From Andalucia godoyi And28 (Eukaryota; Protista; Jakobida): DNA of 64,000 bases. The notes below the pieces were generated by a model. It saw nothing but the letters and a program-made list of their open reading frames with translations. It ran no database searches and had not been told where the DNA came from. Location of the stretch: contig VRVR01000016.1 in NCBI GenBank assembly GCA_009859145.1, forward strand, positions 7,780-71,779, written 5' to 3'. Of this stretch, positions 31,929 through 33,329 are shown piece by piece; within the stretch, counting starts at the first letter, position 1, and every line of letters begins with the position of its first letter. A program made the position numbers and the translations under genes.

Positions 31929-33329
31929 ATGGGAGGGATCAAATCACCGCCGGAAGTCTGGCGCTATGTTCAGCAGACAGGGTTTTACAAGTCTCGAATG
32001 GACTGGAAGCGCACTTTGATACTGGCAATCTACGCAGGCGTCTTTGTTGGGTTTGGAGCACTCGCCGCGACATCGGTGGCCTACAACATGCCAGTGACAC
32101 GCGTTGAGAATCCCGGTGTTGCCAAAGCCGTGTACGCAGCAATATTCCCGATTGCGCTTTTCCTGATATACTACACTTCTGCAGAACTGTTCACTTCCAA
32201 TTCAATGTCTCTGTTTGCTGCGCTCTTGTACTACAAGAATAAGCGATCCGCGCTCGGACTTGCGAAGAACTGGCTGCTCGTTTTGCTCGGAAATCTGATG
32301 GGCTGTCTGGCGTGTGCGTATGTGTTTGGATACCTGTCTGATTTGTTCAAGGACGAGCCGTATCCATCGGTGCTTGCAGCTGCTGCCGAACACAAGGTGC
32401 ATGCAGGGGCATTTCAGGTATTTATTAGAGCGATCGCATGCAATTGGTGTGTTTGTTTGGCCGTGTTTGGCGGATCGTCGGCGGATGAACTGGGAGGACG
32501 GCTACTCGCTTTGTGGGCCCCGATCTTTGTCTTCGCGTGCATCGGACTCGAGCATTTGATTGCGTCGTTTTTTACAATCCCACTGGGAATGATGTACGGT
32601 GCAAACGTGACAATATACCAGTTCTTGATTGAATACTCGCTCCCGGTGCTTGCAGGAAATATCATTGGTGGATCGTTTTTCATGTCGGGTGTCTTGTGGT
32701 ATTTGTTTACAAATGCACCGCCTGTCCGCAAGCTGTCGCACGAGAACCCATTGCCAACCCACGTTGCAGCTACCATTTCACCTTCTCAAGCAACGTCAAT
32801 GTATGAACAAACTGTGCAGGTGATGCAAGATCAAACCGTAGAGTTCCGAAAACGGTACCTTCGCAAGGACGGGAAGCCGATCGAGGTCCTCGTGCACGCA
32901 AGCTTGATTCGCGATCCGGAAGGCCACCCATTGAAGGCGATGTCCCAAGTGCGAAGAGTGAATCCAAGAACGAGTACTGTGGATCGTAATGAGACTCCTG
33001 GAGTGATTGTGGCGGACGTGTCATCAGACGGGCACGCTCGCCGCATCCAATTCATCGATGACAATTTGGCATCGCTACTCGGATACGGGCCCCTCGACAA
33101 GGATGATCTTGTCGGGAAGACCGTGCAAGATATTACATACTCGGAAGATGGAGCAGTGACCGACCATGCATTTCACCATTTGCTCTCCAATTCCACGGCT
33201 GGTATGTCGTCCGTGGTAGAAGCCGCTCGTCTGGTCCGAGATGTCAGGAATTCGTCCCCACACAGCTACGACAACGAATTCGACCATCTTTCGCCTGCAT
33301 CCACCGCAACGCCCGCACACAGCGTCTGA
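31929..33329 (+). CDS. Formate/nitrite transporter (FNT) fused to C-terminal PAS/PAC sequence
   Basis: FNT motifs AGVFVGFG, AELFTSN, IACNWCVCLAV and GLEHLIA, followed by PAC-like FRKRYLRKDGKPIEVLVHASLIRDPEG and PAS-like LLGY...LVGKTVQDITYSED. Confidence 0.9.
   Translation: MGGIKSPPEVWRYVQQTGFYKSRMDWKRTLILAIYAGVFVGFGALAATSVAYNMPVTRVENPGVAKAVYAAIFPIALFLIYYTSAELFTSNSMSLFAALLYYKNKRSALGLAKNWLLVLLGNLMGCLACAYVFGYLSDLFKDEPYPSVLAAAAEHKVHAGAFQVFIRAIACNWCVCLAVFGGSSADELGGRLLALWAPIFVFACIGLEHLIASFFTIPLGMMYGANVTIYQFLIEYSLPVLAGNIIGGSFFMSGVLWYLFTNAPPVRKLSHENPLPTHVAATISPSQATSMYEQTVQVMQDQTVEFRKRYLRKDGKPIEVLVHASLIRDPEGHPLKAMSQVRRVNPRTSTVDRNETPGVIVADVSSDGHARRIQFIDDNLASLLGYGPLDKDDLVGKTVQDITYSEDGAVTDHAFHHLLSNSTAGMSSVVEAARLVRDVRNSSPHSYDNEFDHLSPASTATPAHSV

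Follow-up and report, generated by a model that had tools for sequence, protein, structure and literature searches.

We describe a gene on the forward strand of a 64,000-nucleotide stretch of Andalucia godoyi And28 DNA (contig VRVR01000016.1; the whole stretch is called the window here) that encodes a complete channel of the formate/nitrite transporter (FNT) family, followed by a tail in which the two halves of a PAS domain stand in swapped order and which probably folds as a single, circularly permuted PAS domain. The coding sequence is free of introns and runs through 466 uninterrupted codons from an ATG at 31929 to a TGA at 33327-33329. Its translation is 100% identical to a EukProt gene model, and the N terminus of the protein lines up with the starts of its homologues in the alignment. 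On the 3' side lie 196 bases with a noncoding appearance and then a gene for a RING-finger protein on the opposite strand, which ends at 33526, and therefore no missing PAS half is concealed by an intron, a frameshift, or a further exon. The parts of the gene and the protein are listed in Table 1.

Table 1. Layout of the FNT-PAS gene in the window, in the order in which its parts occur (pLDDT, predicted local distance difference test of AlphaFold2)
Feature	Residues	Coordinates	Strand	Basis
Whole gene (FNT plus permuted PAS)	466 amino acids	31929..33329	+	Open reading frame list, translation, exact match to EukProt gene model
FNT channel domain	10-258	31956..32702	+	PF01226, 229.6 bits; Thr89 and His209
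Variable tether from the last membrane helix to the PAS part	263-303	32715..32837	+	7-38% identity in the family (background); pLDDT <50 at 262-301
PAS C-terminal half, Gβ-Hβ-Iβ, first in sequence	304-344	32838..32960	+	C-terminal profile parts only; 27-68% identity in the family
Pro-rich closing loop, RVNPRTSTVDRN	345-356	32961..32996	+	Unconserved; pLDDT ~95
PAS N-terminal half, Aβ-Bβ-Cα-Dα-Eα-Fα, second in sequence	357-421	32997..33191	+	N-terminal profile parts only
C-terminal end tail, probably disordered	422-466	33192..33326	+	4-29% identity; length of 22-82 residues in the family; pLDDT <50

The channel domain matches Pfam PF01226 from end to end (profile positions 2-240 of 240, E = 4.5e-68, against a cutoff of 34.6 bits). 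The motif ELFTSN at residue 86 supplies the Ω-loop threonine, Thr89 (codon 32193-32195), and the motif LEH at residue 207 supplies the central histidine, His209 (codon 32553-32555); neither residue varies across the aligned FNTs, and both match the corresponding motifs of LciA. Chlamydomonas LciA (PDB 9v2a) is also the closest solved relative by sequence (E = 1.9e-46), and the AlphaFold2 model superimposes on it with 37% identity and a TM-score of 0.91 on the target, while PfFNT, FocA, and HSC give TM-scores of 0.77-0.89 (target), as expected of the aquaporin-like six-helix protomer fold. A Foldseek search with the model of the whole protein returned FNT structures only among the 50 matches listed. 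Every sequence and fold feature tested places the channel in the FNT family (Pfam PF01226, TC 1.A.16). It resembles the LciA/NAR1 group (Chlamydomonas LCIA) and, more distantly, PfFNT, FocA, NirC, and HSC in being a full-length FNT that keeps the threonine and the histidine, and the protein is probably an LciA/NAR1-like FNT, predicted to form a pentamer and to transport anions. Unlike the solved FNTs, which are matched through the channel part only, it adds about 200 C-terminal residues with the permuted PAS domain, and FNT-only homologues have no such tail.

The two segments of this tail match opposite ends of the PAS profiles. The first (about 32770-32960; residues 279-338) matches only their C-terminal parts, namely, positions 41-90 of 103 in PAS_9 (PF13426), about 25-85 of 89 in PAS_3 (PF08447), and 55-109 of 113 in PAS (PF00989). 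For the second (about 32995-33190), the match is confined to the N-terminal part (PAS_9, 8-59 of 103), as it is for the second segment of a metagenomic homologue, P0002 (PAS_3, 2-49 of 89); the window segment also aligns to the region from Bβ to Fα of the PAS-B domains of HIF-3α and PERIOD. In the native order, no contiguous full-length PAS match was found: PAS_3 reaches 22.4 bits in a half-length match over positions 26-84 of 89 (cutoff, 25.6 bits), and the 27.3 bits of PAS_9 are summed from two separate stretches. The connectivity in all six members of the family described below is G-H-I-loop-A-B-C-D-E-F, not the canonical A-B-C-D-E-F-G-H-I. A Gβ motif, KRYxRKDG, is common to the tail and the PAS S-box proteins. 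As the tail is homologous to PAS domains yet lacks both the contiguous match and the A-to-I connectivity, we treat it as a permuted variant rather than an ordinary PAS domain. A candidate for a hidden third strand set after Fα (VEAARLVRD, Gβ-like) was rejected, being shared with P0002 only and predicted with a pLDDT of <50. A sequence-only reading of this DNA had described a single open reading frame at 31929-33329 that holds a complete FNT domain with its channel threonine and histidine, followed by the C-terminal and then the N-terminal half of a PAS fold; each of these statements holds, and the positions it gave for the halves were right to within a few bases.

Several comparisons suggest that the two halves make up exactly one PAS core. 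When they were rejoined in silico in the canonical order, five of five members matched PAS_3 in one stretch, from positions 2-4 to 84-88 of 89, with scores of 30.9-47.2 bits. When the swapped-back sequences were made into a profile, it matched 30 PAS domains of solved structure with alignments that cross the artificial joint (residues 241-321 of HIF-1α PAS-B are one case), whereas a control profile in the native order gave three half-length matches to solved structures, with E values of about 0.3 when built from two sequences and 0.008 when built from five. Because the swapped-back matches span the joint, the halves are exactly complementary, with neither gap nor overlap between them, and all PAS core elements (strands Aβ, Bβ, Gβ, Hβ, and Iβ and helices Cα to Fα) are present.

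Structure prediction points the same way. With five family sequences, AlphaFold2 modeled residues 301-420 of the whole protein with a pLDDT of 72-88 and the flanks at <50, and for the tail alone (residues 296-425, with an alignment of the family plus 47 bacterial junction segments) it returned the same elements with a mean pLDDT of 92.4 and a predicted TM-score (pTM) of 0.84, a value which means one rigid body rather than two loose halves. The predicted strands lie at about 300/304-311, 317-328, 334-344, 358-364, and 370-376, the first three with a pLDDT of >90, and the predicted helices at 378-383, 399-402, and 405-420/421; the tail-only model has five strands and four helices in total, in the permuted order. 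A Foldseek search of the tail model against the PDB gave no significant match. The best matches were chains with tandem PAS-A and PAS-B domains (ARNT in AHR, NPAS, and HIF complexes), over 118-138 columns at a root mean square deviation of about 20 Å, together with 3nja, a lone PAS domain, which matched over 43-45 columns at 1.4-1.5 Å. Foldseek depends on sequence order, and a local PAS match with no whole-domain match is to be expected if the parts are PAS-like and differently connected; the lack of a significant match thus neither proves nor disproves a PAS geometry of the model.

In a search of 5.8 billion proteins, P0002, the product of a single open reading frame on a JGI metagenome contig, was the sole full-length relative (51% identity). 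When 1.84 billion representatives were searched exhaustively with HMMER and a profile of the two tails, three more proteins with an FNT and the tail came to light: P0044 (Andalucia godoyi ANDGO_00684, called "putative formate transporter" at its source), P0169 from Cyanophora paradoxa, and the fragment P0102. A word-indexed search with the full-length family profile, which is not exhaustive and missed two known members, added P0192 from the transcriptome of Cyanoptyche gloeocystis (MMETSP1086). P0102 lies on a 2-kb contig (L004; JGI 3300016818, Ga0186637_101128; 1-2027) with a run of N in its middle. Across this run the contig encodes a whole FNT as well, the start of which is nearly identical to that of the Cyanoptyche protein, and the run splits the coding sequence for the FNT and the permuted PAS domain into two called open reading frames, so that P0102 is the second part only; the contig probably comes from a glaucophyte transcriptome. 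No further members were found in metagenome contigs or in bacterial and archaeal genomes scanned with family-specific peptide patterns. The named homologues therefore place the fusion in a jakobid (Andalucia) and in glaucophytes (Cyanophora and Cyanoptyche), and at least one of them is a single transcriptome sequence; the architecture seen in the window recurs among protists. A partial PAS match is already present on these proteins in the precomputed Pfam columns.

Across this small family, the two halves appear to have evolved under the same constraint as the channel. Between the window protein and P0002, ANDGO_00684, and the Cyanophora protein, identity is 56, 46, and 34% in the FNT domain, 68, 49, and 34% in the PAS C-terminal half, and 55, 42, and 35% in the PAS N-terminal half. 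Over all pairs, identity is only 0-38% in the tether, the loop, and the end tail, which vary in length too. In every member, the conserved portion of the tail starts at Gβ and stops at the end of Fα. Thus, the halves are as conserved as the channel while their flanks are not, which means that halves and channel share a constraint and that the breakpoints are common to the family. In a rough neighbor-joining tree of the FNT domains, the window protein, P0002, and ANDGO_00684 grouped together in 199 of 200 bootstraps and the two glaucophyte proteins in all 200. A single origin of the fusion is the parsimonious, though not proven, reading of the identical breakpoints.

The likely source of the tail can be traced as well. 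With the tail profile, HMMER retrieved 1983 proteins at E <= 1e-3, 112 of them at E <= 1e-10, from the same 1.84 billion representatives, and judged by this profile result the resemblance of the tail to PAS domains is not due to chance. Among the best 150 of these 1983 matches, on which our statements about composition and half patterns rest, nearly all proteins apart from the FNT fusions are long and of the multi-PAS type, and many of them have a single continuous alignment from about position 41 to about position 160 of the profile, which takes in a C-terminal half, a linker, and an N-terminal half (E values down to 1e-26). A hidden Markov model of the family tail gave 272 junction-spanning matches among the top hits, and the named top matches are bacterial "PAS domain S-box" proteins from Kryptonia, Planctomycetota, and Legionella. 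In the bacterial proteins, the linker between the halves is about 26 residues long, helical, and of the type DITERKRAEEALRESEERFR; in the FNT fusions, it is a Pro/Gly-rich loop of 6-12 residues (12 in the window protein). When the best 150 matches and the extra family members were scanned with separate profiles for the two halves, a pattern of one C-terminal half, one N-terminal half, and nothing else was found only in the FNT fusions, all other proteins being alternating arrays. The tail is therefore like the PAS_3/PAS_9-type S-box PAS domains in its similarity (20-32% over about 120 residues) and in having all nine core elements, and unlike them in the order G-H-I-A-B-C-D-E-F, in its single copy without flanking complementary halves, and in the short loop that stands in place of the helical linker.

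Colinearity with a tandem junction, together with a lone pair of halves that sum to one domain and have no complementary halves beside them, is the outcome expected of circular permutation by the duplication/truncation route. Most likely, the channel acquired, in one step, a piece of a bacterial-type tandem PAS array that starts midway through one domain and stops midway through its neighbor. The helical interdomain linker would then have shrunk to a hairpin-like loop, so that Iβ would now run directly into Aβ, the adjacent antiparallel strand of the PAS sheet. The sequence-only reading had proposed such a capture of the inner halves of two tandem bacterial-type PAS domains, and had suggested that these could fold as one domain; the colinear S-box junctions, the swapped-back profile matches, and the compact monomer prediction agree with it on both counts, and the structural part of that interpretation is well supported by sequence comparison and modeling. 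The second-ranked protein of the exhaustive search, P0043 (Paulinella micropora g43597.t1, 4799 amino acids), is a giant eukaryotic protein with 28 tail-profile stretches and more than 30 PAS halves in the half-profile scan, and it owes its rank to repetition alone.

Taken together, these results lead us to regard the tail as probably one naturally circularly permuted PAS domain carried by an LciA/NAR1-like FNT, with a putative regulatory or sensory role. The termini of FNTs are cytosolic, as established from FocA structures, so that five permuted PAS domains would lie under the cytosolic vestibule of the channel on flexible tethers of about 40 residues. The new termini would sit at the position of the Fα-Gβ loop, with the tether entering the domain at Gβ, and the connection from the last membrane helix would therefore arrive beside the usual ligand pocket. 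The Fα-Gβ region adjoins this pocket and moves upon ligand binding in heme-PAS sensors such as FixL. Five PAS domains below the mouth of the pentamer may thus constitute a regulatory or sensor module that controls flux or couples the channel to a partner, and among the roles considered for the tail a regulatory one appears most likely. An analogy, and only that, is offered by the KCNH (EAG/hERG) K+ channels, in which a cytosolic PAS ("eag") domain on a multimeric channel modulates gating through contacts at the cytosolic face. The KCNH channels differ from the window protein in that they belong to an unrelated channel family and carry their PAS domain at the N terminus and in canonical order, and the two fusions are not homologous. 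FocA, which is controlled by way of one of its cytosolic termini, offers a second parallel for a regulatory role.

A more specific proposal, which extends the ligand- or redox-gated channel suggested in the sequence-only reading, is that the PAS domain, captured in one step and with its termini at Fα-Gβ, senses a ligand or redox state and is coupled directly to the FNT gate, in an arrangement conserved from jakobids to glaucophytes; we consider this possible and put it forward tentatively. About equally tenable is the view that the permuted PAS domain is a real fold and not a sensor, and that it provides a constitutive site of docking or assembly, for instance for a metabolic enzyme or a targeting factor, while leaving gating unchanged. 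Many PAS domains without a known ligand work via protein-protein contacts, and two of them, ARNT and PERIOD, are the closest solved sequence relatives of the tail; moreover, FocA itself is regulated by the binding of pyruvate formate-lyase at its cytosolic terminus. The docking view also draws on the family alignment, in which we found no conserved cofactor residue. It differs from our preferred explanation in the last, inferred step alone, and nothing in the data opposes it.

Several observations weigh against the reading of the tail as one permuted, regulatory PAS domain of a single family. No cofactor-binding residue is conserved across the family, with no heme-type histidine or LOV-type cysteine seen in the alignment by eye, and three of the four aligned homologues lack the Fα histidines seen in the window protein. 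The family itself is small, comprising six clusters. Monophyly of all fusions was recovered in just 49 of 200 neighbor-joining bootstraps, with a tail-less FNT from Syssomonas placed nearby. The sheet order B-A-I-H-G is deduced from the known adjacency of Aβ and Iβ and from antiparallel pairing in PAS folds. Finally, the deeper alignment behind the confident model consists mostly of tandem-PAS junctions, and because these lack covariation between the halves, the confidence of that model rests on the learned priors of AlphaFold2.

Granted that both halves fold, they might still complete each other between subunits, the C-terminal half of one tail pairing with the N-terminal half of its neighbor to give a ring of five intersubunit PAS domains or swapped dimers. 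FNTs are obligate pentamers in the solved structures, which keeps five tails close together, and half-domains are a classic substrate for three-dimensional domain swapping. We nevertheless consider such an assembly unlikely, since the predicted monomer is already compact and its closing loop is modeled with confidence, the shortening of this loop in all members favors an Iβ-Aβ hairpin within one chain, and the tether is variable and predicted to be disordered. It is far less probable that the tail is a decaying relic of a longer multi-PAS extension, made up of two broken, nonfolding halves without function. Such a view could appeal to the native-order scores near or below the Pfam cutoffs and to the Cyanoptyche copy, which appears degenerate and stops early. 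It is at odds with halves kept as well as the channel across the jakobid, the glaucophytes, and other lineages while the adjoining segments are at background, with breakpoints identical in all members, with the compact domain that AlphaFold2 predicts at high confidence, and with flanks that are too short for the missing halves (37-41 residues on the N-terminal side in the three closest members, and down to 22-27 on the C-terminal side). A chimeric gene model or assembly that fuses an FNT gene to a piece of an adjacent PAS gene, for which the unusual architecture is the sole argument, is refuted by the uninterrupted reading frame and by the independent homologues, the same fusion being present in six sequences of separate provenance, one of them a transcriptome entry and another a transcript-like contig.

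Engineered forms of PAS permutation are found in the literature searched. Circularly permuted photoactive yellow protein is one engineered PAS permutant. In another, cpLOV2, the PAS termini were joined by a short linker and new termini were opened elsewhere, which shows that the fold tolerates permutation (bioRxiv 10.1101/2021.05.19.444876). In contrast to both, the permutant in the window is natural and conserved, and judged by the predicted order of secondary structure it is cut inside the core, between Fα and Gβ. Permutation has also been invoked in the evolution of PAS-like folds, between longin and roadblock and in an early proposal for Cache/PDC domains (PMC3521125, PMC4822843). Those permutations are seen at the level of the fold only, between old superfamilies, whereas the one described here is recognizable in sequence and has an identifiable parent arrangement, the tandem PAS junction. 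In the literature searched, we found neither a combination of an FNT with a PAS domain nor a description of this permutation.

The surroundings of the gene are those of an ordinary eukaryotic nuclear locus, with an EF-1α-like GTPase, two ABCG transporters, a GATA factor, Atg3, Noc2, UTP10, and others as neighbors. The region is gene dense, with long unbroken open reading frames, apparently poor in introns, and about 50% G+C, and a scan with Rfam found no RNA gene within the window. Directly upstream of the FNT gene lies the gene for the EF-1α-like translation GTPase (30185-31573, forward strand), taken by eye to be of the "EFL" type and also present on two short assembly contigs from sequencing runs; an antisense open reading frame of 483 codons (30176-31627, reverse strand) covers this entire gene, most likely as a side effect of codon bias. 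The two ABCG-type half-transporter genes (24523-26970, reverse strand, and 27205-29796, forward strand) stand head to head about 230 bases apart, which suggests divergent paralogues with a common promoter region.

Farther away, a nuclear gene at 1557-2909 (reverse strand) encodes a histidyl-tRNA synthetase of the alphaproteobacterial type, probably the mitochondrial enzyme. Its neighbors in a homologue search are all bacteria, the best named ones being Rhodospirillales-like (42-44% identity). Almost every one of these bacterial matches has the anticodon-binding domain PF03129, which is absent from the precomputed Pfam list of the window protein, and the window protein was the only one of ten window proteins looked up to be found also in NCBI and UniRef. 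An open reading frame at 10377-11477 (forward strand) carries a domain of glycoside hydrolase family 25 (lysozyme type), which is commoner in bacteria, phages, and fungi. This frame overlaps the end of the opposite-strand open reading frame 9334-10398, so that its gene model needs to be checked. The 462-amino-acid protein encoded at 18674-20062 (reverse strand) has no Pfam match and clusters with metagenome peptides of 38-44 residues, which suggests that the clustering is driven by a short repetitive or low-complexity stretch. Two very long unbroken open reading frames lie on the forward strand, one of 2531 codons at 40304-47899, in which IQ calmodulin-binding motifs are the only Pfam matches at E <= 1e-5, and one of 2375 codons at 52886-60013 that encodes the nucleolar UTP10/BP28 protein.

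FNT channels move formate, nitrite, lactate, and bicarbonate, and they include the drug target PfFNT and the algal carbon-concentrating component LciA. A built-in cytosolic domain of the sensor type, if true, would be a new mode of regulation for this family. The tail also offers an unusually clear case of circular permutation, in which the sequence still shows the parent junction, how the linker was shortened, and exactly where the breakpoints lie, and for protein engineering, a natural opening of the PAS core between Fα and Gβ may provide a new attachment geometry for PAS and LOV switches. Because Andalucia and glaucophytes share the fusion, one may also ask whether it is ancient in eukaryotes or was transferred between them.

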